IMG/VR virus record: IMGVR_UViG_3300023174_000038
Coordinates: 248,001 to 312,000 of that record
Length of the DNA stretch: 64,000 nt
Direction: 5' to 3' (one strand)
Shown here one piece after another: positions 16,202 to 50,596 of this stretch; position 1 is the stretch's first letter; each line of letters opens with the position of its first letter. Position numbers and translations under genes: made by a program. A model generated the notes under the pieces. It saw nothing but the letters and a program-made list of their open reading frames with translations. It ran no database searches and was not told the DNA's origin.

Positions 16202-16942
16202 ATGACAAAACATTGCTTTATTGTGACCAGTGCGGTCAACACAAAATGGGGTATGTATGATAATGAAACTAGGTTCAAACAAACTATTGCTACCTTAGAC
16301 AGCATACATAAATATGCCCCAAATAGTAAAATTATAATTATGGAATGCGCTGCCATTCCATTAACTGAATGGCAAACTCATGTATTGGGTGAGAAATCAA
16401 ATTTGATTGTAGATTGGACTAGTCATCACATGGTTCAACATATTAATGACCAATCAAAAGATGAAAGTATATTAAAAAACTTCACAGAAATCAATTGTTT
16501 CCCTGGAACTATTGAACATTGTTTAGCAACCGATATACTAGATGATGTGGATCGTGTACATAAAATATCAGGTAGATATACATTAAACGAACATTTTAAT
16601 TTAAAACTATACGAAAACAATCAAAAAATTGTTGTTGGTCCAAGACGACCTAGCAGATTACCATTCATATCAGCTTCAGTAGAATATGAATATCCATGTA
16701 GACTGTGGAGTTGGCCTAAGTCTATGTCTAATGATATTGCAACGATGTTCAATGAAATGTTACCATTTCTTGTTAATCATAGAAAAAGAAAATATATAAG
16801 TGAGACCGGAGAAGAACTACAAGCATATATGGATCTTGAACATTTACTATATCATTTCCTTGATCCAAATAAGATTGAATCTGTACCTAAATTGGGTCTT
16901 GATGGAAATCTGTCTTGGACAGGTGAACAAATCAATGATTGA
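16202..16942 (+). CDS. Glycosyltransferase-like hypothetical protein
   Basis: FIVTSAVN...RFKQTIATLDSI, HKISGRY, DLEH motifs; TAAATA box 5 nt upstream. Confidence 0.55.
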   Translation: MTKHCFIVTSAVNTKWGMYDNETRFKQTIATLDSIHKYAPNSKIIIMECAAIPLTEWQTHVLGEKSNLIVDWTSHHMVQHINDQSKDESILKNFTEINCFPGTIEHCLATDILDDVDRVHKISGRYTLNEHFNLKLYENNQKIVVGPRRPSRLPFISASVEYEYPCRLWSWPKSMSNDIATMFNEMLPFLVNHRKRKYISETGEELQAYMDLEHLLYHFLDPNKIESVPKLGLDGNLSWTGEQIND

Positions 16943-17771
16943 TTTTTAACAATTGATCCATAGTATACAAATTACGCATATAGGGTGATACATTAGCTAG
17001 TACTGAACTAGGTAAATCACCCTTTCTTCTTGGACCATATTTTACTTCAAAACTACATTCATTTACTTTTTGAAATAAATCAACAATCTCTTGTACAGTA
17101 TAACCTACTCCGTGACCTAAACATTCAACACTATTGCTAGGCTTTTCAATAGCTTGTATTAATGCATCACATATTTCATTGACATGTACATAATCACGTA
17201 TACATGTACCATCAATAACTGATACATCATAGTCATTACCGTAGATAGTGAACTCACCCGTGTCACGTGCTTTCATTAGATTGTACATTAACCCATCGGG
17301 GTTAGTGGGAGCCACGACGGTACTTCCAATAACATTATAAAATCTAAAGATTGTATATGATGTTGGACGATGGGTAGTACAATATTCTCTAACAACATCT
17401 TCGGCAGCACGTTTACTAATTCCATAAGCACTGGAACAATCTTGTGCGGCACCGGTACTTGCAAAGATAAAGTTTTTAGTCTTTATCTTGTTAATGACAT
17501 TCATTGTACCATTCAAATTGGTAATATAATATTTGATCGGTATCTGTTCACTCTCACCTACACGAACTAATCCCGCTAAATGTATTACTGTATCATATTC
17601 AATATCGCCCGGGATAGCAAATTGTCTATTGATATCACAACGATAAAATTCATTTAAGGGTGCTTGTGGTTCCTCAATATCTAGTCCATGAACTTCATAA
17701 TCATTTTCAAGCATCTTACATAGATGACTACCTATGTATCCCGAGCAACCTGTAATTAAAATCTTTTTCAT
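16932..17771 (-). CDS. NAD-dependent NDP-sugar epimerase/dehydratase (GalE-like)
   Basis: GCSGYIG, HLAG, YGISK, RFYNV, RDYVHV, RRKGD. Confidence 0.9.
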   Translation of the reverse strand: MKKILITGCSGYIGSHLCKMLENDYEVHGLDIEEPQAPLNEFYRCDINRQFAIPGDIEYDTVIHLAGLVRVGESEQIPIKYYITNLNGTMNVINKIKTKNFIFASTGAAQDCSSAYGISKRAAEDVVREYCTTHRPTSYTIFRFYNVIGSTVVAPTNPDGLMYNLMKARDTGEFTIYGNDYDVSVIDGTCIRDYVHVNEICDALIQAIEKPSNSVECLGHGVGYTVQEIVDLFQKVNECSFEVKYGPRRKGDLPSSVLANVSPYMRNLYTMDQLLKINH

Positions 17772-19105
17772 TAAAAACTAAACAGGCTTAATCCTGTTTC
17801 CTCTTCTATTGGTTCAAAACTAGGGTCTTTTGTTAAATATGTATCCTCATCAGTATAGATAACACGGAACTTATGCTTGTTAGTTAATACACTACGTACA
17901 TCATCAATACAAATAATACTACGGTTTAAATCACTAATGAAGTCAACATGTTTAATTGTAGTTTCATTACATATCTTTGCAGTGTTTGTGTTAGATTGTT
18001 TAGGCTTAAAGTTTCTAAAACATTCCATCCATTTATGAAATACATTAGCTTCTTGTTCCTGTGCGTGTTGTAATGCTCCCAAGTTATACCATCTTTCTGC
18101 TTTTTCAAAAATATCATATAACTCTTTTGCTTTACTTGCCATGCCTTTTTTAGTACAAGTATAGAAAAAGCTTTTATTGAAGTTATTAGTCCATCGCTGA
18201 TTCTCTAATACTAATGTAGGCATTTGAATATGTTGTTCATAAAAAGCCATACCATAACTCTCTACTGTGCTAGGATTAAAAGCAATTCTAGCACTTGTAA
18301 TAAAGTCAACTTTCTCTTGACCAATAATACTTACTTTGATTTCGTATGGTACACCAATCTTCTTTAATCTATCTTCAAACTTTTTAGCACCATTAGCACT
18401 AGTCATTACTTTAGCAGGTAATTTTGTTTGTTCAATCAAGTCTAAGAATAGTTCAGGATTCTTACCTTCTTCCCAGCGACCAACAAACAATACACCTTCA
18501 CGTGGTTTATGATGTTCTTCTAATAAACCTTTTTCTGTAATAGGGATAGGTAAGTGATATGAAGATTCATTTAAATGTAGTTGATTGAATTTACTCTGTG
18601 TGCCCACATCAATATTTGTTAAGCTTAATTGGTGACGCATTGCTACATTAGTGTTGAACAAGAAGGGATTCTTAGTGTCTGTAAATATCTGGCTTTCTAA
18701 GTGAGTATATGCAATGATTTGAATCACATCTTCAAGTCCCATAGTACTAGCTACCTGTACAGTTTCATATGTGTTACATATTAATGCATCATATAAATTA
18801 TGTTCTAATGCTTCCACAATAGCTGTACGGAAGTTAGCCATACGTTCATAACAAAAGGTATCTCCATACATAAAGATATTGCTATGGTCAGTATACTTCA
18901 ATGATTCTAATGGAGCTATGATATTTGCAGGAATAGATTTAACAAACTCTGTATCCTGTGGTTCTTTATCTGTAATGATATCAACTTTGATATTATGTTG
19001 GTCCATTAGTTCACAGAAGCTTTTAGCAAATTGTCCTATTCCCCCATGTGGAATGAGAGTTTGATAGCTTACCAAAAAACCAATTCGTTTATCGTATGTT
19101 TTCAT
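17771..19105 (-). CDS. GT-B (GT4-like) glycosyltransferase
   Basis: PHGGIG, LFVGRWEEGKN, PSTVESYGMAFYE. Confidence 0.85.
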   Translation of the reverse strand: MKTYDKRIGFLVSYQTLIPHGGIGQFAKSFCELMDQHNIKVDIITDKEPQDTEFVKSIPANIIAPLESLKYTDHSNIFMYGDTFCYERMANFRTAIVEALEHNLYDALICNTYETVQVASTMGLEDVIQIIAYTHLESQIFTDTKNPFLFNTNVAMRHQLSLTNIDVGTQSKFNQLHLNESSYHLPIPITEKGLLEEHHKPREGVLFVGRWEEGKNPELFLDLIEQTKLPAKVMTSANGAKKFEDRLKKIGVPYEIKVSIIGQEKVDFITSARIAFNPSTVESYGMAFYEQHIQMPTLVLENQRWTNNFNKSFFYTCTKKGMASKAKELYDIFEKAERWYNLGALQHAQEQEANVFHKWMECFRNFKPKQSNTNTAKICNETTIKHVDFISDLNRSIICIDDVRSVLTNKHKFRVIYTDEDTYLTKDPSFEPIEEETGLSLFSF

Positions 19106-19275
19106 TTATCTTCTACAATAGGCACATCTTGCCATTCATTCCATTTTTTTACAGATACATATCTACCATCATCAGTCTTAGTACTGTAATCAGTTACTTC
19201 AAGTTGTGTTCTATATTGTAACACTTGTTCAGGTCCGTCCCAGCCGTTTCGGACAAGATATCTTAATTCAAACAT
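19102..19275 (-). CDS. Small hypothetical protein (57 aa)
   Basis: Manual ORF MFELRILVR...VLQYR...EWQDVPIV; ATGA overlap. Confidence 0.65.
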   Translation of the reverse strand: MFELRYLVRNGWDGPEQVLQYRTQLEVTDYSTKTDDGRYVSVKKWNEWQDVPIVEDK

Positions 19276-19279
19276 ATAT

Positions 19280-19510
19280 TTACCTCGTTAGTTTCCATAT
19301 AATATGGGTATTCTTATCGTGCCATCTATGTTCAAAGACAGGATCACCGGGACCAGTAATGATTCTAGTTAATCGGTATCCATACTTTAACCAAATACGA
19401 TTACCGGATATATCACATCTCTGCGGTAACCAAGCAAACTTGTATTCGGTGCCGATCATTCTTTCATAGAAATGATTGTATGGCTGTGTTTGTGGCATTA
19501 AGTTCCCCAT
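19280..19510 (-). CDS. Hypothetical protein
   Basis: FAWLPQRC..SG..IWL motif. Confidence 0.65.
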   Translation of the reverse strand: MGNLMPQTQPYNHFYERMIGTEYKFAWLPQRCDISGNRIWLKYGYRLTRIITGPGDPVFEHRWHDKNTHIIWKLTR

Positions 19511-20346
19511 TCGTTTTTGAAAAGATCACATTGAAGTCTGGCACTATATCTCCACCCTCTTTCCATAGCAAGGTTGGCAACTGTTTTAGTATTAAGTTGA
19601 TATTTGTCATTTGTTCCGCCCACAGGCATTAAATATACAGGACCTCTGAATCCAGCAATACGATATTCTTTAACTGCCTTTTCTGCCTCTAGTACATCAT
19701 CTTCTGTTGCTACTACAAACTTAAGATACACAAAGCCTATACTTTCATATTGACGAATGATACTAGGACAGATTGCTTCACTCCACTTCTCACCGCTGAT
19801 ACTTAATTTAGGACTGACACTAAATGTTAGAGCATTCTTTTCTCTGTTAATCTTCCATTGCTGTAGATAGATTGATAGGTCTTGACTAAGTTCTTGCGTA
19901 CCGTTAGTTTCAAATGTAATCTCTTTCAAACTTTTCATTTTTTCGTTTGAAAGTAATTCAGGATAAGACCTTTGCCAACCAAGTAGAGGCTCCCCACCAG
20001 TGATAACAAGGTGTTCGTCCATCCAGCGATTGTGAGGAAGCATAGCCATAATGTCGTCAACAATATCATCGGTGGGGCGAACAGGACTAAGATGCTTAAA
20101 CCTAGGATCCCATGAAGCATAGCTATCACACCCTGTACTGACCAGCGGTAATTTTTTATAATCATCATAATAGTGAACCCTTGACGCAATATCTTCTACT
20201 TCTTTACTAGTTTGACCTTTAGGCATGCCGAAGCCTGCACATGTAAAGTTACAACCAAATGTTCTTAGGAAAATACTTGGTACACCGATATATCGGCCCT
20301 CTCCTTGTATACTATAGAATAGTTCTGAAATTTTTATGTTACTCAT
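19498..20346 (-). CDS. queE: 7-carboxy-7-deazaguanine synthase (radical SAM)
   Basis: ELFYSIQGEG, RTFGCNFTC...GCDS, ITGGEP, FETNG, SVSPK. Confidence 0.93.
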   Translation of the reverse strand: MSNIKISELFYSIQGEGRYIGVPSIFLRTFGCNFTCAGFGMPKGQTSKEVEDIASRVHYYDDYKKLPLVSTGCDSYASWDPRFKHLSPVRPTDDIVDDIMAMLPHNRWMDEHLVITGGEPLLGWQRSYPELLSNEKMKSLKEITFETNGTQELSQDLSIYLQQWKINREKNALTFSVSPKLSISGEKWSEAICPSIIRQYESIGFVYLKFVVATEDDVLEAEKAVKEYRIAGFRGPVYLMPVGGTNDKYQLNTKTVANLAMERGWRYSARLQCDLFKNEWGT

Positions 20347-20350
20347 ATTT

Positions 20351-20542
20351 TTACCAATTATGTATTGTGTTTGCTATAATGAAAAAACATGTTATCACAT
20401 GTAGCACCACCCAGAAAGTTTTTAGGAACAATGCGATTCTTGCTTCACCCAATGTAAGAATAGGTACATCAGGACGATCATCATCAGTATTACCCATTAG
20501 ATGACCGGTTGCTCTTGCCCAGATTTTTTCTAAACTATTCAT
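20351..20542 (-). CDS. Small membrane protein
   Basis: C-terminal TM helix; WARATG motif. Confidence 0.65.
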   Translation of the reverse strand: MNSLEKIWARATGHLMGNTDDDRPDVPILTLGEARIALFLKTFWVVLHVITCFFIIANTIHNW

Positions 20543-20958
20543 TAAGCTACCTCGTCTTTATTGTTGCTAGGATATTTTGCACTAGTATATCTAATAACTA
20601 ATACGCTTATTGTTACAATAAATGTAGAAACAGCAACCGCTAACATTTCAACAATATTAATTGGCTGATGACTCATTATATCTACCATATGCCGTGTCAG
20701 TGCTGTTATTGCAATGTATAACAAGAACCTGACAGGCATATGATTGGTCTTGAAATAAATGCCTACCATTGCACCCATTTCTAAATAGATAAACATCAAC
20801 AACAAGTCACCAACAGTTGCGTGATGTTTCTGAAACAGTTCAACAAAAGTACATCCGGCTGCCCATACTGTTGCGGCACCGATACCAAACAATGCTAAAC
20901 GATGAAATATATCTACTAAGGTATGTCCTACCTTATCTACCATTTCTGTTTTTAACAT
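20542..20958 (-). CDS. psiE: Phosphate-starvation-inducible PsiE-family membrane protein
   Basis: 4 TM; DLLLMFIYLE...YFKTNHMPVRFLLYIAITALTR. Confidence 0.88.
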   Translation of the reverse strand: MLKTEMVDKVGHTLVDIFHRLALFGIGAATVWAAGCTFVELFQKHHATVGDLLLMFIYLEMGAMVGIYFKTNHMPVRFLLYIAITALTRHMVDIMSHQPINIVEMLAVAVSTFIVTISVLVIRYTSAKYPSNNKDEVA

Positions 20959-21440
20959 TATTCAAACTCCCTATCTTCTCTATGACCACCTCTACCTGCC
21001 ATATTACTATCAGTCTCACGTACCTCTACCCTACAACACCATACACGCTTTGCTTCTTCACTACCACAATTAGGTAAAAAGATTGTGTTAATGTATTCGT
21101 ATAAGAAGTCAGATATTCCCTCACAACCAGTACGCTCTACTTCTGTAATCTTAGCTAGTTTCAAACGACCTAGTTCTAATAGATGTTCACGCATAGGGTC
21201 ATCCTGTGCGACTAATAATGTATGGTCAAACCATTCTTCTAGTTTATCTTTAAGTGGTCGTAATCCCCCAAAGTCAGTTACCCAGTTACGTGCATCTAGT
21301 GTATCAGCTTCAAATTCAAAGTGAAAACTCATAGCATAGCCATGAATTAGATTACAATGACTGTCGGCACGCCATTGACGATATGCGACAGGACCTATTT
21401 GTCTGTATGTTTTTGTTGAAAAGAATTTTTTGTTTGCCAT
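20958..21440 (-). CDS. queD: 6-carboxytetrahydropterin synthase
   Basis: SHCNLIHGY, WVTDFG, FDHT, E..N C-terminal motif; next to queE/folE. Confidence 0.88.
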   Translation of the reverse strand: MANKKFFSTKTYRQIGPVAYRQWRADSHCNLIHGYAMSFHFEFEADTLDARNWVTDFGGLRPLKDKLEEWFDHTLLVAQDDPMREHLLELGRLKLAKITEVERTGCEGISDFLYEYINTIFLPNCGSEEAKRVWCCRVEVRETDSNMAGRGGHREDREFE

Positions 21441-21516
21441 TGTGTTCTCCTATGTTGTATTATAGCATAGGCAGCAGAATTTGTAAAGCGGGAATGATGC
21501 CAAAAGGCCGCTGTTC
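21441..21516 (-). promoter_or_regulatory. queD leader: sigma70 promoter embedded in structured RNA element
   Basis: TTTACA-17-TATAAT; AGCGG/CCGCT stem; GGCA/TGCC potential pseudoknot; CCTATG/CATAGG hairpin over RBS. Confidence 0.55.
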
Positions 21517-21990
21517 TTATTTATTAAGAGTGTTAATGATTTGGGCATCAGCTACCCGTTTACGTAAACTTGAACTACTAAAACTGTGGTCACGACCATT
21601 GAACACAATTTCAATACCTCGTTCCCCACCTTCATATCTTCCAGTAAACTCTTTATCAGCATATTCAACACCCAAAATGCGAACATCTAGGGGTAGAATC
21701 AGTAATAGGTCAATAAGGTCCTGTTCAGTTTGATATACAACAACTTCATCTACATAACGGCAAGCCGCAAGCTGAATCTGTCGCTCTACAATACTTTGAA
21801 TAGGTTTGTTCTTAGTATCAGGACGATCAATGGTTGGATCTGTTTGTAATCCACAAATCAAGTAATCACAGTGGTTCTTTGCCTCACTTAACATAGCAAC
21901 ATGTCCTGCATGTAGCAAATCAAATGTACTAAAGGTAATACCAATCTTTTTACCTTGTGCTTTTAATTCTTTGATATGATTGAAAATCAT
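21517..21990 (-). CDS. Cytidylyltransferase (glycerol-3-phosphate CTase/TagD-like)
   Basis: FDLLHAGH, ER, YVDEV, SSSSLR; start likely MIFNH at 21990. Confidence 0.88.
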   Translation of the reverse strand: MIFNHIKELKAQGKKIGITFSTFDLLHAGHVAMLSEAKNHCDYLICGLQTDPTIDRPDTKNKPIQSIVERQIQLAACRYVDEVVVYQTEQDLIDLLLILPLDVRILGVEYADKEFTGRYEGGERGIEIVFNGRDHSFSSSSLRKRVADAQIINTLNK

Positions 21991-22223
21991 TTTGAAAGAG
22001 TTCTCCACATTTTAACTTGGTCATGCTCTTTTAAGAATTCATCCTCACCCACAAATGTAGGACTATCTGCCATAATCTCATCTAACAACCACTTGATACG
22101 ATGTAAATCTTTTTTGATTTCAAACTGATTGAAACCATCATTGTAATTGCTATGTAATTCTACACCACTCATATAGATTTGATGATGTACACTGTTGTAA
22201 TCCATTTGTTTACGCAAGCCCAT
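21987..22223 (-). CDS. Hypothetical protein
   Basis: Operon-packed ORF. Confidence 0.7.
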   Translation of the reverse strand: MGLRKQMDYNSVHHQIYMSGVELHSNYNDGFNQFEIKKDLHRIKWLLDEIMADSPTFVGEDEFLKEHDQVKMWRTLSK

Positions 22224-22909
22224 TATTTACATCCCTTGTTAGCAATCTGTAAGAACTCTTGTCGTGCCGCTGGATCTGTTTTAAATCCACCACCTAAACG
22301 ACAAGTAACTGTACTAGAGCCTGTATCTTCTACACCACGTGACTTAACGCAATAGTGTTGTGCATCAATCATAACTGCAACATCTTCTGTATCAAGGATG
22401 AACTGTAAGGTGTGAAATATTTGTTCAGTTAATCTTTCCTGTATTTGCGGACGTTTACTGAAATATTCTACGATACGGTTGATCTTACTAAGACCTAAAA
22501 CTTTTTGTTTAGGGACATAAGCTACAGTAGCCAATCCATCAATCACTACACCGTGATGTTCGCAGTTAGATTGAACATTAACATTACGCTCTACAACCAT
22601 TTCGTTGTATTGCATCTTGTTGTCAACTGTTGTGCATTTCGGAAAGTTTTCATCTTTAAGACCGAAATATATTTCATTAATATACATCTTAGCCATTCTA
22701 TTTGGGGTCTCACGAAGGCTATCATCATTTAAATCTACACCCACTGTTTTCCAAATAGTAGTAAATGCATCCTCTAAAATGTCAATTTTCTTTTTATTTT
22801 CTACTGCAAGAGCAGATTCGTTGATGGGAGTTTCTACTCCTACTTTAGTAAGATACTCTCTTACTTTTTTACCCAATATTGGGTCACATTTGGTTTTGTC
22901 AAAACTCAT
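22223..22909 (-). CDS. folE: GTP cyclohydrolase I
   Basis: ETPNR, CEHH, GLSKINR, RPQIQERLT, HYCVKSRG. Confidence 0.95.
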   Translation of the reverse strand: MSFDKTKCDPILGKKVREYLTKVGVETPINESALAVENKKKIDILEDAFTTIWKTVGVDLNDDSLRETPNRMAKMYINEIYFGLKDENFPKCTTVDNKMQYNEMVVERNVNVQSNCEHHGVVIDGLATVAYVPKQKVLGLSKINRIVEYFSKRPQIQERLTEQIFHTLQFILDTEDVAVMIDAQHYCVKSRGVEDTGSSTVTCRLGGGFKTDPAARQEFLQIANKGCK

Positions 22910-22924
22910 ATTGATTCTCCTTAC

Positions 22925-23767
22925 TCAAATTTGTTTATGATTTAAAAATGTAGGTTTAGTTAAATTCCAAACTAAACCATACTGATACTTCTTATCAGGA
23001 TTAATGGAAATGTCATTATCATTTCTATACTTTCCTTTTAACTCTCCTTCAAAAATTATTCTCTTTCCTGAAGGTTTGTATAATCTTCCGTAGCTTATAG
23101 TGTACTCTAATTTTATTAGTTCTTCAATTTTATCGGGTGAAAGAAATTTCTCTTCACCGTTTACTATACACCATTTCTTACCCTTAACTGCGGACTTACC
23201 ATACATACCATTAACTTCTCCATGTCTGGCCATTTGAGTCTTTGATCCAACTCTAAATTTTATTTCGCTAGTATTGATAATATTAGCAATACTAAAAATT
23301 TGGTGGTACAATGGCAATTGATGATACTTTATAATAGAATGCTCACCTAATATGATATTATATATAGTTATAGTATCTTTTCTAGGATTATTGAATGTTT
23401 TCTTTTTGTGTGATGCCACTGCCCTAGACGATGACCAATTGCTAGTTCGTATATTAGTTAAGCCGTATTTTTGCTTCAACTCCAATATCAATTTTAACTC
23501 TATGCATAGAGCCTCATCTTCTGTAAGACCTTCACTGATTTTTACAATCTTAGGGTTCAATCCTAAACTTTGTATTAACCTAATAGTGTTTAACTTATGA
23601 CTATTTTTATGTTTTCTAGTCGGTCTAGCATCTTTTAAGTGGTCAAAAAGTCTACTACCAATGCCCTTACCTATATAAAAAGGCTTCGCTGAAAAAGAAA
23701 AAACACTTGAATTATAACTTCCCTCTTCCATGGGATTTAAATATGCGTATACATAATACTGTGACAT
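22925..23767 (-). CDS. Free-standing GIY-YIG homing endonuclease
   Basis: YYVYAY...PFYIGKG..R...H...E...LTN; NGMYGK NUMOD-like motif; AT-rich insert. Confidence 0.82.
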   Translation of the reverse strand: MSQYYVYAYLNPMEEGSYNSSVFSFSAKPFYIGKGIGSRLFDHLKDARPTRKHKNSHKLNTIRLIQSLGLNPKIVKISEGLTEDEALCIELKLILELKQKYGLTNIRTSNWSSSRAVASHKKKTFNNPRKDTITIYNIILGEHSIIKYHQLPLYHQIFSIANIINTSEIKFRVGSKTQMARHGEVNGMYGKSAVKGKKWCIVNGEEKFLSPDKIEELIKLEYTISYGRLYKPSGKRIIFEGELKGKYRNDNDISINPDKKYQYGLVWNLTKPTFLNHKQI

Positions 23768-23843
23768 ATAAGCTTCCTAACTCCTTATATTAAAATTTTA
23801 GAGACAGAATCTATCTTATTCTGTCACATGTATTTATGCCTGT

Positions 23844-24041
23844 TTACTTAGCTTTTGCTTTTTCTTCGGCACGTGCGGCTTTTTCTGCTGTAATTTCATT
23901 ACGGCGTGCTTTAACCGCTTTAGCTAACTCTGCTAACGCTTTACGGGCACGTGTACCTGCGGCTGCATTGCCTTTGTTAAATTTATCATTTTCAGCATTG
24001 TATGCTGCCAAACTTGTTTCAATATCGTTTTGTGCGCTCAT
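23844..24041 (-). CDS. Histone H1-like (Hc1-family) DNA-binding protein
   Basis: KFNKGNAAAGTRARKALAEL...RNEI. Confidence 0.8.
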   Translation of the reverse strand: MSAQNDIETSLAAYNAENDKFNKGNAAAGTRARKALAELAKAVKARRNEITAEKAARAEEKAKAK

Positions 24042-24058
24042 TTTGTTTCCTTTAAATG

Positions 24059-25237
24059 TTATGAGTATTTTGTTTCTCTTGTGTATTTACGATAATCGGT
24101 AGTCATACGTAAATATTGTTCTCCGTTGCCTTCCATGATATCACAGATACGGTCAATTGTCCCATCATTGTACTTACTAATACGACCTTGATAGTTATGC
24201 GGTGCCATCAACAAATTTTGCAATTTAGACATAGCATCATCAATACTCCAAGGAATATATAGTCGGGTATTGTCATTTGCAAACGTTTCTGGAAAACTAC
24301 GATATGCTGGATATAATACATTACAACCCAACGTATCTGCTTCACTAACTGTATTACTTACCCAGTCTTGTAAAGCACAATTAAACAGTACTCTAGTATC
24401 ATTTAATAATTGATAGTAATCATTCTTTTCCAAATCTTCATAGATAACTAGTTTACCTTGACTTTGCAGTTTTCTAGTACGTTCCATATAACTTTCGTTA
24501 TTGCTTTTTAGTTTACTACCACTGAATACGCAGAACTCTACTTTAGTATTAGACCTAGAATGAAATGCTTCAATCAAATCCATATAGAAGTCAGGTTGTT
24601 TCTCTTGATCCCAACGTGCTGAAAATGCTACACGCATCTTACGTTGGTTGAAGGGTTTTAACGGTCCTGCAATACGTTCACGTACTTCATCTTTACCAAA
24701 TGCTAATCCTGAAATATTATAGATAGGAGCCTTCCAACCCGCAATCTTCATATGCATTACCATTTCTTCATTAGTAGCTAGTACACCGTCAACGAATGAA
24801 TCAACCATCTTTTCATAGTGACCCATAAATTCACTCATGCCCCATACATGTACGAAATCATCCGGATCAATTGACTGAGCAAGACAACGGACAAATATAC
24901 GAGGACGCAGATTAGCAGGAACTTGCTTAAGTATATAAGGAAGGCTTTCAATGCCCGGCTGAAACATATCTTCAAAATAGATAATATCTTCATCACTACA
25001 CTCACCTTGTTTCATCATCTTTACTAGATTCATTAATTGACTCATACCGTAGTATGTACGTCCATGTGCATCTAATACTTGTCCTGTTACAATAGCTTGG
25101 TCATTACTTAATGTATCACCGGGAACGATAACATAGTTAATGCCTCTACGTTTAAAGACACGTTCATTCCACTCTTGTAACTGTAGTGTATACCTGGCCT
25201 TGTACGGCTCAAGTCCCATGTAGTACAGCTTTCTCAT
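24059..25237 (-). CDS. GT-B glycosyltransferase (putative DNA glycosyltransferase)
   Basis: FSARWDQEKQP, ALQDWVSNTVSEA, YPAYRSFPE; start likely MRKLYY at 25237. Confidence 0.82.
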   Translation of the reverse strand: MRKLYYMGLEPYKARYTLQLQEWNERVFKRRGINYVIVPGDTLSNDQAIVTGQVLDAHGRTYYGMSQLMNLVKMMKQGECSDEDIIYFEDMFQPGIESLPYILKQVPANLRPRIFVRCLAQSIDPDDFVHVWGMSEFMGHYEKMVDSFVDGVLATNEEMVMHMKIAGWKAPIYNISGLAFGKDEVRERIAGPLKPFNQRKMRVAFSARWDQEKQPDFYMDLIEAFHSRSNTKVEFCVFSGSKLKSNNESYMERTRKLQSQGKLVIYEDLEKNDYYQLLNDTRVLFNCALQDWVSNTVSEADTLGCNVLYPAYRSFPETFANDNTRLYIPWSIDDAMSKLQNLLMAPHNYQGRISKYNDGTIDRICDIMEGNGEQYLRMTTDYRKYTRETKYS

Positions 25238-25434
25238 GGACGTGCGTCTTCCTGCCACTGATCCTTAGCCCACTTGCCAGTTACTGCTTTAGTAAATTGA
25301 CGATATGCAAAGCTACGCATATCATATAGGGTTGATTCATCAAACTTGTATCCATAATCTTGACAGAACATTAGATAGTTTTCTAGGTCCTCAAAGATTT
25401 GTTGAACACGTGGGTTAGATTGTTGTTTTGCCAT
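25234..25434 (-). CDS. Hypothetical protein
   Basis: IFEDLENYLMFC..YGY.FDE; AAGGA RBS. Confidence 0.72.
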   Translation of the reverse strand: MAKQQSNPRVQQIFEDLENYLMFCQDYGYKFDESTLYDMRSFAYRQFTKAVTGKWAKDQWQEDARP

Positions 25435-25445
25435 TATATATTCCT

Positions 25446-25901
25446 TTAAATAGCTAGTTGTTGATAAGGTTTGTTTGTGTTATAGACAATAGTAGCACCA
25501 TTCTCATTATCTTCTGATACTTGAATAGCGATATTACGATCTGGATACCGAGTTGCAATGACTTCATAGAGGTCATCACTAATCATTTCACAACTTTTGT
25601 AATCCAATTGAAGAATGCCTTGAGAATATTGATTCTCTAACCATCTTTTAAATTGGATAAACTCAATATCACGGTCGTTGTGAAATACTTCAATAGACAC
25701 TTCAAAATGAAAGATGTGTCTATGTGGAGTAGCTAAAAAGCTAACATCATACTCATCACCTGTAGCAAGTGCTGGGTCTGTTGCAGCCGCTGGGTATTTA
25801 TGAATACCTTCTTTTTGAAAACGTACAAAGATTGTACGTAATGCATTATCTTTAATGCGAGAACGTTTCTCTGCCATTGCTTGTTCATGTTGTTCTATCA
25901 T
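25446..25901 (-). CDS. QueD-paralogous T-fold protein, DpdL-like (putative CDG decarboxylase)
   Basis: LATPHRHIF matches the LxxxHRHxF signature recalled for DpdL; EGIH, SCEM, VSEDNENG. Confidence 0.72.
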   Translation of the reverse strand: MIEQHEQAMAEKRSRIKDNALRTIFVRFQKEGIHKYPAAATDPALATGDEYDVSFLATPHRHIFHFEVSIEVFHNDRDIEFIQFKRWLENQYSQGILQLDYKSCEMISDDLYEVIATRYPDRNIAIQVSEDNENGATIVYNTNKPYQQLAI

Positions 25902-26125
25902 TTAAAATCCCTGTTTAATGTTGCCCATGTTAACCACTTATGAAATGTATTATACACTAATTCTGCTTCTTTGTCATCTTGAGGTACCCGTTTACCACGT
26001 ATATAAAACCCATCTTTTGAAATACGTAACATTTCATCTGAACCACCAGTAAAGGTGATAGTAGAGTCCTGATTATCGGCAGTCATCGTTGACTTAACTG
26101 TAAGTGATGGAGTAATGTTAATCAT
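25898..26125 (-). CDS. Hypothetical protein
   Basis: EMLRISKDGFYIRG; operon-packed. Confidence 0.65.
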   Translation of the reverse strand: MINITPSLTVKSTMTADNQDSTITFTGGSDEMLRISKDGFYIRGKRVPQDDKEAELVYNTFHKWLTWATLNRDFK

Positions 26126-26129
26126 TATA

Positions 26130-26687
26130 TTATTTCCAATAAGGGCCCCAAGCCCAATTAATTAATGACCATCTGGTCCCTGATGTTAACAAACTAACTG
26201 CATGTGTATAAAAACTAGGAAATGATATTAGCGTACCTTTTTTATTAGGCATAGTTTTACCTAAAATACTAAATATCCCGCCCTTGTAATCAGTATCATT
26301 ACTAAGTTGTACTATTGTAGTAAATTTTCTATCCATAGTTTGTCCACGAGATGCTCCAAAATTGTCAGGATGTTCATTAAAAAAGTCAGATGTTTTGTAA
26401 CGTTTTAAAACGTAAGGCTCAATAAAAGTAATATCAAATCCATGAAATTTTACAATTTCTTCCCAATCTTTTTCAAAAACGTCTTTAACTTTATGTTGTT
26501 TATCTAATACACAATCTTCATATTTTAAACGGTTAACATTTGGACTATACTTAGGCACACCGGGTTTAACATGACTGGTGCCATACTCAATTAACTCATC
26601 ACACATATTATTAGATAAAAAATCTTCTTTAATAAGTATTTTATCTAACAAATTCCAAGATATTTCAGGTTTAACTATAATATCCAT
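26130..26687 (-). CDS. 2OG-Fe(II) oxygenase (prolyl-hydroxylase-like)
   Basis: HxD (HPD), YKGG, FPSFYTHAV, GTRWS. Confidence 0.88.
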   Translation of the reverse strand: MDIIVKPEISWNLLDKILIKEDFLSNNMCDELIEYGTSHVKPGVPKYSPNVNRLKYEDCVLDKQHKVKDVFEKDWEEIVKFHGFDITFIEPYVLKRYKTSDFFNEHPDNFGASRGQTMDRKFTTIVQLSNDTDYKGGIFSILGKTMPNKKGTLISFPSFYTHAVSLLTSGTRWSLINWAWGPYWK

Positions 26688-28297
26688 TACCTATTATCCC
26701 CTAGGGCTTCATTCATAGCATCATCGCTATCCTCTATTACTTCTTCAAACTCTTCCTCAACTTTTGGTTGATCTATTACGTCAAAAAATTTGTCAAAGTT
26801 AGTCATTGCATTAGCAGTTTTCTTACCACTAATGCCCTGACTACCCGATTGAAACTGCATCCAGTATCTACTATGATAATCAATCAAATTGATAGCTTCC
26901 TGTTTAGTTTTTTTACTAAAGATTTCATCAATTAACTCACTAAAAAACTTACTACCTTCAAACTTGTGAATTAACATTTTAGGTACAGTGCCATTTTCAT
27001 ATTGACGATTAGCTTCTTGTACTGCATTCATATGCATCCAAACATTATGACTTTGAAGCAAGGTATAACTTAATGTATCCCAACTAGTTTTAGTTTCTTT
27101 ACCATGCTGTCCCAAAAAACCTTGACCACGATAACAAAGATCCTTAAGCACTAGTTTATCAGTTACTGGACTATCTGTAAAGACTTTATGGATGCCTTCA
27201 GCTAATACAGCATCACGAAATTTACGGGTATCATTAGCATAACTTTTCTTTTCAGCAGTCTTTTCCATACTGTATGACCATTTCTTATTATGCTCAATGT
27301 TAGTATTGAAATAAGCTAGACCTTTAGCCGCACTATAGAATGGGCTTGCACAGTCAAAGGTAATCATTAGTTTAGGGTTGTGATATTTGCGTATAGCTTT
27401 CTGAATATCAGTAAACAATACAGCATATTCTAAAATACTTGTACCCAAACAATGAATTAAATCATGTTTACCTTCTACTAATAAACCATCATGGATAATA
27501 TCAATCATACGTGTCAACATCAAATGAGGATCAATCTTATTTTGACCACCAAACGCCCAACCATTAAAGTGATTGTCTGGATATATATTTGGGTCACAAT
27601 ATTTCTTCATCTCATTATACCAATCTTCTGATTGTGTATGATTACGACCCTGCAATACATTTAAGAACTTACATTCGCCTGTGCGATTATTAATAAAGTA
27701 TTCGTTATTAATATGGGTAGCTTTAACTGCATCTGCAATGTATTGAATTCCATGAACACTTACTCCTGATCCAGGAATAACATTACCCTTTTCGTCTTTC
27801 TCAAGAGTTTTTGGATCTTTAAGATGATAGGTTGTTAGTGATTGTGAAGGAATATCTAAACACATACCATAATTCATATATGTATCCATCCAGTTTAATA
27901 CTGCTTTACGCTTAACCATAGCTTTAGGGCAATTAGGATCTTTCCAATCAGCAGGCCATTGACCTTTTAAAATCTGAAATCCACCAGAGTCACCCAACAT
28001 AAACGTATCAGCTTCACGTTCTCTAATAATACTTTCACTAGGATCGTCTTTAGTAGTATCTAAGTTAGCATGACCAGCACTATACAAACCCCACTTATAA
28101 TAATAGAGTCCCTCTTTACTGTTTAAGAAGTTTAGTTTCTCTACATCACCATTGAATTGAGCAGGGATTCGTGCTTGGTCAAAGTACTCTTCACCTTTAC
28201 GTTGCTTACCTAAACCAGAGATATAAAAACTACTGACTGCGGGTAAGAACAATGCCCAATCGGGATTTTGTTTTACTGATAGATTATCTTGTTCCAT
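26687..28297 (-). CDS. dpdA: TGT-superfamily DNA 7-deazaguanine transglycosylase (DpdA-like)
   Basis: GDSGGFQ, LDIP, NVLQG, GWAFGG, HCLG, TFDCASP, terminal HN; sits with folE/queD/queE. Confidence 0.82.
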   Translation of the reverse strand: MEQDNLSVKQNPDWALFLPAVSSFYISGLGKQRKGEEYFDQARIPAQFNGDVEKLNFLNSKEGLYYYKWGLYSAGHANLDTTKDDPSESIIREREADTFMLGDSGGFQILKGQWPADWKDPNCPKAMVKRKAVLNWMDTYMNYGMCLDIPSQSLTTYHLKDPKTLEKDEKGNVIPGSGVSVHGIQYIADAVKATHINNEYFINNRTGECKFLNVLQGRNHTQSEDWYNEMKKYCDPNIYPDNHFNGWAFGGQNKIDPHLMLTRMIDIIHDGLLVEGKHDLIHCLGTSILEYAVLFTDIQKAIRKYHNPKLMITFDCASPFYSAAKGLAYFNTNIEHNKKWSYSMEKTAEKKSYANDTRKFRDAVLAEGIHKVFTDSPVTDKLVLKDLCYRGQGFLGQHGKETKTSWDTLSYTLLQSHNVWMHMNAVQEANRQYENGTVPKMLIHKFEGSKFFSELIDEIFSKKTKQEAINLIDYHSRYWMQFQSGSQGISGKKTANAMTNFDKFFDVIDQPKVEEEFEEVIEDSDDAMNEALGDNR

Positions 28298-29470: not shown

Positions 29471-32188
29471 TTAACCGAAACTGAATAAATCATCAAACGT
29501 ACTGTTGGTATCTGTATTGCTACGAATATCCCAACCAAGTACACCCAATAAGTTATCAATCTTCTCATCTACTAACGTCTGTTCCATAGCTGAATCATCA
29601 AATGGTAACTCAGTAAACCATTTGGGTAAACGTAATTCATCTACGGGATATGCCACACTTGTAAACCCTAATGGATTGGGTTTGAGTTTACATACAACAA
29701 CCTTCATACCATCAATAATCTTTTGACTATAATTATCGCTGTTTACTCTACGCAAGTAATTGTAATTAAGTGCCGCTCTTACGTGACCGGGCATATTAGC
29801 TCTGCCTGTACTACTCTTTGCTTCTAAGTCACCATACATTGTAAGTTTGTTGACACCTTTAGGCGATCCTTTAGTCCAACTATCCTGTGCAGATAAGATA
29901 CGTTTGAAATCTTTTACTGCTTCAATAACTTCCTCACGACCTTTACCCTGTTGAAGAACCATCTGTAATACATTCATTAAGAATTCTTGTACATACTTAG
30001 GTGTATCAGCACGTTTTAAATCAAGACCCATAGCTTTGATATCACCCAATTGTCCGTCTTTATCTTTGCGTTTACCTTCTTTGTCAAAGATGTTAATAGC
30101 ATAACGCTTCTTAACAATAAAGATAGCACGGTCACCAATCAGTTCACGACCAGCTTTAATGATTTCACCATTCTTACGTGGTGCATGAAATGCTTTCTCC
30201 ATGAACGCGGGGAAACTATCATTTGCTTGGTCAGCAATACCGTCATATAAACCAATACAAGTTTCTTTATTCCACTCTAATGCACCAGATTCAATCTGTG
30301 GCTTTAGTGTTGGATATGCCGTAAAGTAACAACTATCTGTATCACCATACACAATAGCATTGCCTTCATGTGAATAAATACCTTCAACTGTTTCATTGAT
30401 AGTACTCATCATATGTTTAACAATCTGTCTACCGGATAGTGTTACTGATTGACCGATACGTTTATCATAGAAACGACAATGTTCATTCAACAAGGCACCA
30501 TAAGCACTATTCAATAAAATCTTACGAACAAGTTGTCGCTTATCGTAATAATCAAACATATCAGTACCATATGCTTCTTTAGCTTGTTTTTGAATTGCTT
30601 TACGTTCTGTATACCAGCGTGTGAGTAGACCAGGTACGACACCTTCTTTTTCATAGGTAAAGATTGTACCGTTAGCACTTAACATCCAAGGCTTATGACT
30701 ATCAAATATCATCTTCCAGATTTCAGCCGCTGACATCTCTACACTACGACCATCTTCAAAATCAACTGTAAGAATTGTACCACGTTCTTGGTTCATGATT
30801 GCAGTATATTCTAATGCACCAAATAGATTCTCCCAGAGAATAGATCCTGTTACAGCATCATCACCTTCTTTGTGACGTTTCTTTTCACTAGCTAATCGTA
30901 ATCCCTTATCGTGCATATATTGGTCTGTGATTGTTTGTCTGACCTGAGCAACGATGGTTTCTCCTGCCATGTTGAGGGCACGAATAACCGAGGGATAGAG
31001 TGAGTTAATGTCAACTGCTCCGACATATTCATGCATACCTCTTTTCGGCGTAGCAACAAAGGCACCTGCTGCCTGCTGGACATCTTCTTCATTTTCAACC
31101 TTTCGTTTTTTATCTGGTACTACTAAGCCACGTTCATGTGCTTCATTAAAAATTGCCATCTCAATCATTGCTACAGAACCCATTACTGTTGGAAGCAATA
31201 CTGTGTTCTCATGTGCAAGTTGATTAGCTAATTCTAAAAACTTAAGTTTGTTGTGAATCTTCACCAACAACATCGTATCTTGTCTGTTATATTCAATAAA
31301 CTTTTTAAAGTCTTTGTTATACAGTTGGTCAAGAGTACCTTCATATTGTGTTTTGTTTTCACCTACTTCCATCTCACCGATACTGTCAAGCTTATAACTA
31401 TGGCGTGATTCATAGTTATACTTTTTGTACAACTGTAGATAGTCTAAGTGAATACGACCTACTAAGTCATAAGTTGTTTCGCTTTTACCAAAGCGTTCAT
31501 ATTCTCTAGCTTTAGGCAGTTGACCCATCAAGCAAAACTTGCGTGTGTCATCCTTACTCATTACTCTAGTAACACGATTGACCATGTAGGGAATATCATA
31601 TCCCTCTGAGTTCCATCCAGTTAATACATCAGCATCTTCAATGAGTTGAAAGAAAACATCAAACATTTCCTTCTCTGATTTGAATAGCATTGTATTATCA
31701 AATTCATTAGTGATTTCTTGGGCTGTTTCACTGCTCATATGTTTCGGAGCAATCACTAATGTAATACATTGGTCTAGCCAATCTAAGTAACAACTGATAG
31801 CTGTAACTGGATTGAATGGATCACTAGTAGGACTGAAACCCTTTTCAGGATCAAAGTCTACTTCAATGTCAAAGAAGCAAGTATGAAGTTTGGGCGCATC
31901 AATGCCAAGATAGTTTTCACTTAGGCAACGAAAGACTACTGGTACATCACTTTCAAACAATTTCTTATTTGAGTGGATGCGTTTTTCTTTTTCAAACTCT
32001 TGTCGTTTGCGAGTACTGAAACGACTGACTGGATCGCCATAGATACTACGATGTTTACCCTTACTATCAGGATAATACAATACGTAGTTAGTAGGGTATT
32101 CTTTGTATTGACGCTTGCCGTCTTTGTTTCTCTCTACAACGTAGATACGATCCTCATCCCTGCTATGAATAGCGTCAATATAACTCAA
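29471..32188 (-). CDS. Family B DNA polymerase (T4 gp43-like)
   Basis: DIE and GWNSEGYDIPY exonuclease motifs; DINSLYPS, KILLNSAYG, YGDTDS, KKRY. Confidence 0.97.
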   Translation of the reverse strand: MSYIDAIHSRDEDRIYVVERNKDGKRQYKEYPTNYVLYYPDSKGKHRSIYGDPVSRFSTRKRQEFEKEKRIHSNKKLFESDVPVVFRCLSENYLGIDAPKLHTCFFDIEVDFDPEKGFSPTSDPFNPVTAISCYLDWLDQCITLVIAPKHMSSETAQEITNEFDNTMLFKSEKEMFDVFFQLIEDADVLTGWNSEGYDIPYMVNRVTRVMSKDDTRKFCLMGQLPKAREYERFGKSETTYDLVGRIHLDYLQLYKKYNYESRHSYKLDSIGEMEVGENKTQYEGTLDQLYNKDFKKFIEYNRQDTMLLVKIHNKLKFLELANQLAHENTVLLPTVMGSVAMIEMAIFNEAHERGLVVPDKKRKVENEEDVQQAAGAFVATPKRGMHEYVGAVDINSLYPSVIRALNMAGETIVAQVRQTITDQYMHDKGLRLASEKKRHKEGDDAVTGSILWENLFGALEYTAIMNQERGTILTVDFEDGRSVEMSAAEIWKMIFDSHKPWMLSANGTIFTYEKEGVVPGLLTRWYTERKAIQKQAKEAYGTDMFDYYDKRQLVRKILLNSAYGALLNEHCRFYDKRIGQSVTLSGRQIVKHMMSTINETVEGIYSHEGNAIVYGDTDSCYFTAYPTLKPQIESGALEWNKETCIGLYDGIADQANDSFPAFMEKAFHAPRKNGEIIKAGRELIGDRAIFIVKKRYAINIFDKEGKRKDKDGQLGDIKAMGLDLKRADTPKYVQEFLMNVLQMVLQQGKGREEVIEAVKDFKRILSAQDSWTKGSPKGVNKLTMYGDLEAKSSTGRANMPGHVRAALNYNYLRRVNSDNYSQKIIDGMKVVVCKLKPNPLGFTSVAYPVDELRLPKWFTELPFDDSAMEQTLVDEKIDNLLGVLGWDIRSNTDTNSTFDDLFSFG

Positions 32189-37936: not shown

Positions 37937-37947
37937 ATTAGTATTTA

Positions 37948-38038
37948 TGCTCACTTTTGATTTCACAGTAGCGAATTGTTACATCAGGCCAGCAGCCGGC
38001 CCACACTTGAAAACGCAAAGGTCCTAAGGTAGTGTGTT
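37948..38038 (-). ncRNA. Candidate structured non-coding RNA
   Basis: GC-rich intergenic with stems CACACT/AGTGTG, GGCCG/TGGCC, TGAT..ACA/TGT..ATCA. Confidence 0.4.
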
Positions 38039-50572: not shown

Positions 50573-50596
50573 ATCCAGTTCCTTTTAAAATAATAT

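Follow-up and report, generated by a model that had tools for sequence, protein, structure and literature searches.

A glycosyltransferase gene linked to a 7-deazaguanine DNA-modification pathway in phages suggests a sugar-decorated purine

The best-described system comparable to the locus analyzed here is that of phage phiST, in which FolE, QueD, QueE, DpdL and a 259-aa TGT-superfamily inserter (DpdA3), located next to the polymerase genes, account for plain 7-deazaguanine (dDG) in DNA (Hutinet/Cui et al. 2023, PMC10516641). DpdL carries the signature LxxxHRHxF and was proposed as a CDG decarboxylase, an activity that is itself unproven, and dDG is the only product proven for a DpdL cluster. 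Phage GT-B enzymes acting on DNA are so far known only for pyrimidines, such as the T-even glucosyl-5hmC made by AGT/BGT and the arabinosyl-5-hydroxycytosine of RB69 and DLP3 (PMC13326640), in which GT-B enzymes and phage-encoded NDP-sugar tailoring genes that vary between relatives decorate hydroxyl groups on pyrimidines made by thymidylate-synthase homologues. Sugars on 7-deazapurines are found in other settings. HuiG of huimycin biosynthesis (and the dapiramicins), a GT4-class glycosyltransferase encoded with FolE, QueD and QueE homologues, puts a sugar directly on the 2-amino group of a 7-deazapurine base (PMC7439116; bioRxiv 10.64898/2026.04.15.718813), although this actinomycete secondary metabolite is made from preQ0 with QueC present, its base is O-methylated, and it is not inserted into nucleic acid. 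In eukaryotic tRNA, mannosyl- and galactosyl-queuosine bear the sugar on a hydroxyl of the cyclopentenediol side chain.

Against this background, we analyzed 64,000 nucleotides of the IMG/VR virus record IMGVR_UViG_3300023174_000038 (positions 248,001 to 312,000; hereafter the window), in which the initial annotation had proposed a 7-deazaguanine pathway interleaved with sugar-transfer enzymes at 16932-28297. The observation held, since all ten of the named genes were found there, all on the minus strand, with PolB (29471-32188) and a clamp-like gene lying upstream, the latter label resting on synteny with Phosso, whose gene at the same position is annotated as a sliding clamp, and not on a family hit. 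The initial annotation had omitted a GIY-YIG homing endonuclease, a PsiE-like membrane protein and eight small ORFs. Its statement that QueC and QueF are absent from the window held for every ORF scanned, as the only PP-loop protein (33139-33768) is a TilS N-domain (TIGR02432, 1.5e-36, above its cutoff). The precursor genes comprise FolE (22223-22909; PF01227, 7e-59; NF006824, 7e-90, above its cutoff), QueD (20958-21440; PF01242, 3e-15), bearing the CxxxHGY-type motif seen in the other QueD sequences, and QueE (19498-20346), a radical SAM protein supported by several QueE NCBIfam models at about 1e-14, below their cutoffs, by Radical_SAM at 3e-5, and by homology to the annotated QueE of PA5oct, ACP17 and BUCT-ZZ01. 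DpdL (25446-25901), a QueD-paralogous T-fold protein, exhibits the motif LATPHRHIF, matched phrog_17812 at 2.5e-32, grouped by BLAST with phiST DpdL and aligned to it at 34% identity.

The candidate inserter (26687-28297, 536 aa) produced no Pfam, PHROG or NCBIfam hit, and no sequence-level match to TGT or DpdA families, but carries DSGGFQ. Its AF2 model (pLDDT 76, pTM 0.81) is a predicted TGT-fold TIM barrel, for which the top six Foldseek matches in the PDB, the only significant ones, were Zymomonas mobilis TGT and DpdA 7ui4 (E 2.8e-7 to 1.9e-5), the next hits being generic TIM barrels at E>1e-3. A profile alignment (hhalign) to the ACP17/BUDD-type DpdA gave E 1.5e-5 and lined up DSGGFQ, LDIP, HxLG and FDC, and D103, D148 and D315 are invariant. 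This large unnamed viral family, with 1164 representatives at 50% identity, is separate from the phiST DpdA3. The lack of sequence-level matches, together with the phosphoribosyltransferases found in some relatives, would be compatible with an enzyme acting on tRNA or on a nucleotide pool, so that the module would modify RNA or make modified nucleotides for the polymerase. We consider this very unlikely given the fold matches, the homology to the ACP17/BUDD-type DpdA, the constant position beside PolB and the clamp-like gene, and the resistance of PA5oct virion DNA to restriction at G-containing sites (PMC12191111).

The first of two glycosyltransferases, GT-B #1 (GT1; 24059-25258), is predicted to be GT4-like, and its likely true start is the ATG at 25237 (residue 8 of the ORF), as relatives and the ESM Atlas record start at M8. 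The window protein is sub-threshold for Glycos_transf_1 (4e-4), but 14 of 18 family members match, the best at 6.8e-12, and a Foldseek search with its AF2 model (pLDDT 79) found BshA, PimA, MshA, GlgM, LmbT and SenB at E about 1e-10. The ESM Atlas also listed bacterial QTMAN_N clusters among its feature neighbors, a lead that Pfam scans of the 18 family members did not confirm. R215, E219 and K220, the donor-binding residues, are invariant, and the motif is EX7E in distant members and DX7E here, so GT1 looks catalytically competent. Its nearest solved structures are small-molecule or lipid GT4 enzymes rather than T4 AGT or BGT, and its acceptor domain is acidic, though DpdA is acidic too. GT-B #2 (GT2; 17771-19105; Glycos_transf_1, 1.3e-4), also GT4-like, whose ESM Atlas neighbors are GT4 families, is 39% identical to a BUCT-ZZ01 gene next to FolE and DpdA, shares only the R-x4-K-x-P donor motif with GT1, and is accessory (17/36 loci). 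Also accessory are a short GalE-like NDP-sugar 4-epimerase (16932-17771, 279 aa; PF01370, 2e-33; TIGR01179 galE, 4.8e-46; E. coli GalE in the PDB at about 1e-33; 27/36 loci) and a sugar- or alcohol-phosphate nucleotidyltransferase (21517-22008; 29/47 loci) containing an HxGH motif. The latter had initially been called a cytidylyltransferase, with a CDP-activated polyol among the suggested decorations, but it scores better as an HldE C-domain/ECT/TagD-class enzyme (rfaE_dom_II 3.6e-23, TagD 4.8e-15, cyt_tran_rel above its cutoff; PDB matches to ethanolamine-phosphate cytidylyltransferase at 1.3e-18 and TagD at 2.7e-12), so a CDP-polyol is only one option.

The remaining genes are less constant. 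The 2OG-Fe(II) oxygenase (26130-26687; PF13640 2OG-FeII_Oxy_3, 6e-11; phrog_61, 7e-28) is an optional occupant of the variable slot between dpdA and dpdL, detected in only 8 of about 70 related loci (about 1 in 9), seven of them in the same slot, at only 37-48% identity, while the sister lineage has an unrelated 178-aa protein there. It is also absent from ACP17, PA5oct, BUDD and BUCT-ZZ01, which all keep GT1, hence the suggested hydroxylation followed by glycosylation is not supported as a general mechanism. A 75-aa ORF (25898-26125) of unknown function is conserved in part of the lineage (tblastn hits of 53-83% identity in about a dozen loci), and a 66-aa protein of unknown function between dpdL and GT1 (25234-25434) occurs at the same position in nearly all related IMG/VR loci at 36-97% identity, both on the minus strand and without family hits. 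The GIY-YIG homing endonuclease (22925-23767; PF22945, 4e-13), a mobile intruder rather than part of the pathway, and the PsiE-like protein (20542-20958; PF06146, 9e-21), a passenger gene, were each present in only 2 of 80 related loci.

The comparative analysis revealed a linkage of GT1 with DpdA and DpdL, making it a core partner of both. Among 80 related IMG/VR loci, and counting only those that extend far enough, DpdA, DpdL, GT1 and FolE were found in 70/70, 80/80, 64/64 and 50/50, respectively (for GT1, loci with at least 1.5 kb downstream of dpdL), an arrangement that is not chance. Out of 50,697 cultured-phage records, 23 hold DpdL and 23 hold a GT1-like gene, and 18 hold both, spanning about seven phage groups (PA5oct-like, ACP17, BUDD/X1, BCSR5, Phosso, BUCT-ZZ01). 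The five others are one clade whose match lacks the N-terminal 38 residues and sits in a GlcNAc-type context. This linkage survives rearrangement, the order being DpdA-DpdL-GT1 here and in BUCT-ZZ01, DpdA-GT1-DpdL in ACP17 and PA5oct, and GT1-DpdA-DpdL in BUDD, while in Phosso DpdL-GT1 stay together with DpdA about 170 kb away. The linkage is not obligatory for DpdL, as phiST, RHph_I1_18, Ahp1 and Bakedbeans have DpdL but lack GT1, so GT1 is not needed for DpdL function. phiST also shares the precursor pathway without QueC and an inserter next to the polymerase genes, but it has a small ATPase and no glycosyltransferase, sugar-nucleotide genes or oxygenase.

The PA5oct-like (Wroclawvirus) cluster EST35_0311-0322 is syntenic with the window, comprising PolB, a clamp-like gene, a small ORF, a DpdA-like gene (34% identity), a GT1 homolog, DpdL (54%) and then QueE. 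Its 353-aa gene between dpdA and dpdL is the GT1 homolog (E 4e-60 to ACP17, 3e-13 to the window). PA5oct has no GT2, nucleotidyltransferase or 2OG oxygenase, has a phosphoribosyltransferase and a truncated epimerase-like gene, and its DpdL motif is HFH rather than HRH. Its DNA is reported to carry a modified, chemically undefined G and to resist cleavage at G-containing restriction sites (PMC12191111). The sugar-nucleotide genes next to GT1 differ by lineage, being a nucleotidyltransferase, a GalE-like epimerase and GT2 in the window, a 325-aa dehydratase/epimerase and a DegT aminotransferase in L080 (one of the lineages compared), and a short epimerase in PA5oct, which is the pattern of glycan diversification seen in DNA-glycosylating phages.

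An alternative is that the DNA carries plain dDG or dCDG, as in phiST, while the glycosyltransferases, nucleotidyltransferase and epimerase act on hydroxymethyl- or hydroxy-pyrimidines in DNA, on virion proteins or on the host envelope. The precedent of phiST, the restriction of known phage GT-B activity on DNA to pyrimidines, and the structural neighbors of GT1 all favor this view. No ThyA or dCMP-hydroxymethylase homolog, TET/JBP or similar gene was found among the window ORFs scanned, although these cover only 64 kb of a probably much larger genome (related contigs reach about 350 kb), so a pyrimidine hydroxymethylase elsewhere cannot be excluded. We regard this alternative as unlikely, since GT1 tracks DpdL and DpdA, not any pyrimidine pathway, through gene-order changes in about seven phage groups, the minimal ACP17 cluster is just QueD-FolE-x-DpdA-GT1-DpdL-QueE, and the cluster sits among replication genes rather than structural or lysis genes. 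Somewhat less likely still, GT1 could be a biosynthetic helper whose sugar does not end up in DNA, making a transient glycosyl intermediate needed to form or deliver the base, or the cluster might also release a free huimycin- or dapiramicin-like glycoside. In line with this, the best structural matches of GT1 (BshA, MshA, LmbT, SenB) act on small molecules, HuiG glycosylates a free deazapurine, phosphoribosyltransferase genes in several related clusters show that free-base chemistry goes on there, and dpdL plus dpdA of ACP17 gave no dDG in E. coli, the authors suggesting that other enzymes may be required (a result that also speaks for our preferred reading). However, phiST makes dDG without GT1, a DpdA-type inserter is always present, and lineage-specific sugar tailoring genes and a second glycosyltransferase fit a final, exposed glycan better than a transient intermediate.

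Together, these observations partly support the initial interpretation, namely its pathway assignment (FolE-QueD-QueE, then DpdL, then a DpdA-like inserter, without QueC) and its central idea that the glycosyltransferases belong to the deazaguanine system. The reading we favor, with moderate confidence, is a phage DNA-hypermodification module that replaces guanine with a sugar-decorated 7-deazaguanine, a base for which we found no description in the literature. Besides the linkage of GT1, this reading is favored by phiST, the phage shown to carry plain dDG, having DpdL but no GT1, by the resistance of PA5oct DNA at G-containing restriction sites, and by HuiG being a known GT4-type enzyme that glycosylates a deazapurine base directly. 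What the analysis establishes is the gene content and its linkage, whereas the biochemistry is inferred. The conversion of GTP to 7-carboxy-7-deazaguanine (CDG) by FolE, QueD and QueE is established for these families and assigned here by homology. The conversion of CDG to 7-deazaguanine by DpdL, a QueD paralog without the catalytic cysteine, is a literature proposal that has never been reconstituted, and the exchange of guanine in phage DNA for the deazaguanine base by the 536-aa protein is inferred from its predicted fold and three conserved aspartates. The later steps are inferred from gene linkage only, in the absence of chemical evidence for any GT1-bearing phage. In this view, GT1, as a GT4-type Leloir enzyme, would transfer a sugar from an NDP-sugar onto the base, either free before insertion or in DNA afterward, the nucleotidyltransferase and the epimerase would tailor the donor, GT2 would add a second or an alternative sugar, and the 2OG oxygenase would be an optional extra tailoring step. 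Against this reading, 7-deazaguanine has no hydroxyl group, so the acceptor atom is unclear, and the one oxygenase is not conserved. Candidates for the attachment atom are the exocyclic N2 (as in huimycin), C7, or an oxygenated C7 substituent. The expected benefit of such a base to the phage would be resistance to restriction enzymes and to defenses that sense deazaguanine.

The window consists of phage DNA with a GC content of about 35%, and its gene content includes PolB, a clamp loader, PhoH, a sigma factor, ClpB and DnaJ-like chaperones, and lysis genes. A co-oriented run of genes extends on the minus strand from 28297 down to 16932, directly downstream of PolB (29471-32188) and a clamp-like gene. 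Family searches confirmed the presence of every gene that the initial annotation had listed in this run, namely a 536-aa protein with a DSGGFQ motif, a 2OG-Fe(II) oxygenase, a DpdL-type T-fold protein, a first GT-B glycosyltransferase (GT1), FolE (7e-59), a nucleotidyltransferase, QueD, QueE, a second GT-B glycosyltransferase (GT2), and a GalE-like epimerase (4.8e-46), and hence the observation itself held. The same annotation had left out a GIY-YIG homing endonuclease (22925-23767), a PsiE-like membrane protein (20542-20958), and eight small ORFs. The endonuclease (minus strand, LEM-3-like) is inserted between GT1 and FolE and was present in only 2 of 80 related IMG/VR loci (L006 at 99% and L036 at 84%), being a recent mobile insertion inside the modification cluster, whereas the PsiE-family (phosphate-starvation-inducible) protein, also on the minus strand, lies between QueD and QueE and was seen in only two related loci (L006 and L007). 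Neither QueC nor QueF was found among the ORFs scanned. The only PP-loop protein in the window (33139-33768, minus strand), located upstream of PolB, was considered as a QueC substitute, but this reading was rejected, as the protein matched TilS_N at 1.5e-36, above its cutoff, with no QueC hit. This stand-alone TilS N-terminal (lysidine synthetase) domain is conserved in relatives (55-94% identity). ARAGORN detected no tRNA gene within the 64-kb window. Other genes in the window, all on the minus strand, include a UvdE UV-damage endonuclease (12380-13447), a non-specific DNA/RNA endonuclease (Endonuclease_NS, 38040-38852), and a protein with sigma-70 region 4 (36983-37966), these three being encoded near the cluster, as well as, at 48296-51394, a full ClpB-type double-AAA+ chaperone (758 aa) followed by a DnaJ-like protein (265 aa), and a 375-aa protein (45902-47029) with a weak cytidylyl-/adenylyltransferase N-terminal domain (CTP_transf_like, 5.6e-4).

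As a first step, we searched for sequence relatives of the 536-aa protein, and no hit was obtained in Pfam (including TGT, PF01702), PHROGs, or NCBIfam, nor did the family profile find any TGT among the PDB sequences. Hence, a fold search was needed. For structure prediction, a shallower alignment (A3) was used, from which the PA5oct and Phosso rows were left out. The resulting AlphaFold model (pLDDT 76, pTM 0.81) recovered only bacterial tRNA-guanine transglycosylases and the DNA preQ0 insertase DpdA (7ui4) as PDB matches with E<=1e-3 (E 2.8e-7 to 1.9e-5, probability 1.00), followed by generic TIM barrels at E>1e-3, in agreement with a predicted TGT-type TIM-barrel fold. A profile-profile comparison additionally linked this protein to the 416-446-aa DpdA of ACP17, BUCT-ZZ01, BUDD, and BCSR5 (E 1.5e-5), aligning the DSGGFQ, LDIP, HxLG, and FDC motifs. 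The published definition of DpdA/TGT rests on three invariant aspartates and a Zn site (PMC10164549). The first of these residues, the general acid/base Asp (Asp95 in S. Montevideo DpdA), is clearly present here as D103 of DSGGFQ, which is invariant in the family and aligns to DSGGLQ of the ACP17/BUDD-type DpdA. D148 (LDIP) and D315 (FDC) are likewise invariant and align to the invariant D111 and D263 of the ACP17-type family, and their equivalence with the base-recognition and nucleophile residues (Asp130 and Asp256 in DpdA) is plausible, although it relies on TGT sequence motifs rather than on a residue-level structural alignment. The DpdA-like gene of one IMG/VR relative (L064:7118-8713) contains one in-frame stop codon, which could reflect a pseudogene, a sequencing error, or recoding, and it was left out of the alignments. 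On this evidence, the possibility that the TGT-fold protein does not act on DNA seems very unlikely, although exchange of guanine in DNA for a 7-deazaguanine is here inferred from the predicted fold and the conserved residues.

The 151-aa DpdL-type protein groups by BLAST with phiST DpdL, to which it aligns at 34% identity, and matches phrog_17812 at 2.5e-32, whereas a sequence search against the PDB returned nothing. The alignment with phiST and ACP17 DpdL and with QueD showed that it carries LATPHRHIF, i.e., the published LxxxHRHxF signature (PMC10516641), where QueD has CxxxHG(H/Y). It is also encoded, as the DpdL definition requires, together with FolE, QueD, QueE, and a DpdA-like protein and without QueC. 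The CDG decarboxylase activity of DpdL has only been proposed in the literature, and Hutinet/Cui et al. reported that dpdL plus dpdA of ACP17 gave no dDG in E. coli, suggesting that other enzymes may be needed. In the Vibrio phage Bakedbeans (gp176, locus L090:7215-8366), the DpdL match lies at the C-terminal end of a 383-aa annotated protein, which may be a fusion of DpdL with another domain.

The GT1 protein of the window scored 20.3 bits against the Glycos_transf_1 C-terminal domain, below the gathering score of 26.4, whereas 14 of 18 members of its family matched this domain (best 6.8e-12). Its predicted structure (pLDDT 79) produced 312 PDB matches at E<=1e-3, with GT4-type retaining GT-B enzymes at the top (BshA, PimA, MshA, GlgM, LmbT, PglA, and SenB, at about 1e-10), in line with a two-Rossmann-domain GT-B fold. 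A donor-binding R/K pair and an EX7E motif define the GT4 class, and in the GT1 family alignment R215, E219, K220, and E306 are invariant, the motif being EX7E in ACP17, PA5oct, BUDD, and BCSR5 and DX7E in the window lineage. The family also has an N-terminal E-x4-R-Y-T signature of its own, and the likely true start of the window protein is M8 (window 25237). GT2 is a second, very divergent GT4-like protein. An ESM Atlas lead suggesting that GT1 resembles tRNA-queuosine mannosyltransferase (QTMAN_N) was not confirmed by Pfam scans of the 18 family members. Neither AGT nor BGT, the T4-type DNA glucosyltransferases, was among the 50 Foldseek matches listed for GT1, and no family hit to them was obtained. 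No thymidylate-synthase-type (ThyA) hydroxymethylase or TET/JBP-like gene was found among the window ORFs scanned, although only 64 kb of the genome was visible. An alternative in which the DNA carries plain dDG and the glycosyltransferases act elsewhere is regarded as unlikely but is retained. Isoelectric points of GT1 and DpdA were also computed to distinguish between DNA and small-molecule acceptors, but both proteins are acidic and this property did not discriminate.

The decisive evidence came from comparative genomics, in which we examined the co-occurrence of the glycosyltransferases with dpdA and dpdL, a test that the initial annotation had proposed. Although a megablast of the cluster against 50,697 GenBank phage records found nothing, a scan of IMG/VR with DpdL revealed at least 598 relatives, of which the best 80 (67-97% identity) come from contigs of up to 347 kb. 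Among the loci of this set that extend far enough, the DpdA-like gene was present in 70/70, GT1 in 64/64, FolE in 50/50, QueD in 38/40, the nucleotidyltransferase in 29/47, the GalE-like gene in 27/36, QueE in 27/38, GT2 in 17/36, and the 2OG oxygenase in 8 of about 70. A conserved 66-aa ORF between dpdL and GT1 was present in nearly all loci. The gap between dpdA and dpdL (window 26130-26687, the same slot in loci L005, L020, L034, L045, L047, L051, and L059, and L080:9468-10004) is a variable slot, holding either a 2OG oxygenase, or a 160-178-aa protein with no Pfam match that ACP17 also carries next to its dpdA, or only a 75-aa ORF. The oxygenase occupies this slot in seven of its eight loci and is only 37-48% identical between loci whose flanking genes are 70-95% identical. 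Because the oxygenase is not conserved, its role as an obligatory hydroxylase was rejected. The interpretation put forward in the initial annotation was thus partly supported, in that the association of the glycosyltransferase GT1 with the deazaguanine pathway was borne out, whereas hydroxylation as a general step preceding glycosylation was not.

Within the 50,697 phage records, DpdL occurs in 23, and a GT1-like gene, searched with the ACP17 homologue as query, also occurs in 23, with 18 records having both. The five extra GT hits, in PhiXhv and Ep032 phages, form one clade with partial matches in a GlcNAc-type context and were therefore treated as an outgroup rather than as counter-examples. 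GT1 lies next to or near DpdL in PA5oct-like Pseudomonas jumbo phages, Acidovorax ACP17, Xanthomonas BUDD and X1, Burkholderia BCSR5, Sinorhizobium Phosso, and the cyanophage BUCT-ZZ01, with gene order differing between them. In Phosso, the DpdA-like gene is about 170 kb away while DpdL and GT1 stay together, and in PA5oct the unannotated 353-aa gene EST35_0317 between dpdA and dpdL is a GT1 homologue. Linkage that survives this much rearrangement and host range argues for a shared function. On the other hand, phiST, the one case with proven plain dDG, has DpdL, a 259-aa DpdA3, and a small ATPase, but no GT1, and a few other DpdL phages also lack GT1, indicating that GT1 is an add-on to the DpdL pathway and not a requirement for it. 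The [M+H]+ of dDG is 267.1. The BUDD and BCSR5 clusters (L085:7380-8953 and L086:6990-9006) share three extra genes between FolE and GT1, one of which is a PAPS-reductase-type PP-loop protein, a possible carboxylate-activating enzyme.

Regarding the sugar supply, the nucleotidyltransferase scored best against the HldE C-domain (3.6e-23), followed by TagD, and in the PDB against ethanolamine-phosphate cytidylyltransferase, which points to the activation of a sugar- or alcohol-phosphate without singling out a donor. The epimerase is closest to GalE. In the sister lineage (locus L080), GT1 is followed instead by a 325-aa NDP-sugar dehydratase/epimerase and a DegT-type aminotransferase, whereas PA5oct has only a truncated epimerase-like gene plus a phosphoribosyltransferase. 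A small phosphoribosyltransferase (Pribosyltran, 2e-11; L001:15946-16380, L003:7093-7554, and loci L045, L052, L057, L058, and L070) sits in the deazaguanine cluster of PA5oct, BUCT-ZZ01, and some IMG/VR relatives, but not in this window, hinting at conversion of the base to a nucleotide in some lineages. A constant transferase accompanied by variable donor-tailoring genes is what is seen in phages that glycosylate DNA pyrimidines (PMC13326640).

Taken together, homology supports the route from GTP to CDG, a TGT-fold inserter, and GT4 enzymes that look competent, whereas the remaining steps are inferred: that DpdL makes 7-deazaguanine by decarboxylating CDG, that the inserter puts this base into DNA, that GT1 adds a sugar to it, and that GT2 and the donor genes extend or vary the glycan. 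The weak point of this view is the acceptor atom, because 7-deazaguanine has no hydroxyl group and the oxygenase is optional. There is, however, a real precedent for the direct glycosylation of a deazapurine by a GT4-class enzyme, as HuiG attaches GlcNAc to the 2-amino group in huimycin, and the dapiramicins carry their sugars at the same position (PMC7439116). The relationship of GT1 to HuiG considered here is limited to this shared GT4 class. C-glycosylation at the electron-rich C7 is a second possibility that we infer. Since the structural neighbors of GT1 are mostly small-molecule glycosyltransferases, glycosylation of the free base before DpdA-mediated insertion is a live option. A further alternative, in which GT1 is a helper or the maker of a free glycoside, is considered improbable. 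More speculatively, and at present unlikely, these phages might make the first glycosylated purine known in DNA by a base-exchange route, in which GT1 would glycosylate free 7-deazaguanine, as a HuiG-like N-glycoside or a C7 C-glycoside, and the unusually large DpdA-like transglycosylase would swap this ready-made sugar-base into duplex DNA, with lineage-specific sugar genes diversifying the glycan.

Literature searches found no paper describing a glycosylated deazaguanine in DNA or noting the glycosyltransferase in DpdL clusters. Deazaguanine insertion and DNA glycosylation are each already known, and what would be new is their combination on a purine. All known sugar-decorated DNA bases are pyrimidines, so that a glycosylated 7-deazaguanine would represent a new class of DNA hypermodification on a purine. 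The system is not rare, as the large and unnamed DpdA-like family alone comprises more than 6,900 clusters at 90% identity in metagenomes and 1,164 representatives at 50% identity, and at least 598 IMG/VR stretches encode the DpdL, on contigs of up to about 350 kb. It also occurs in cultured phages, including therapy candidates of the PA5oct group, whose reported modified G is still chemically undefined, which makes the question testable at once. The proposed involvement of GT1 may explain why dpdL plus dpdA of ACP17 gave no product in E. coli, and it would also bear on the restriction, CRISPR, and glycosylase defences that sense deazaguanines, as well as on the sequencing and engineering of these phages.
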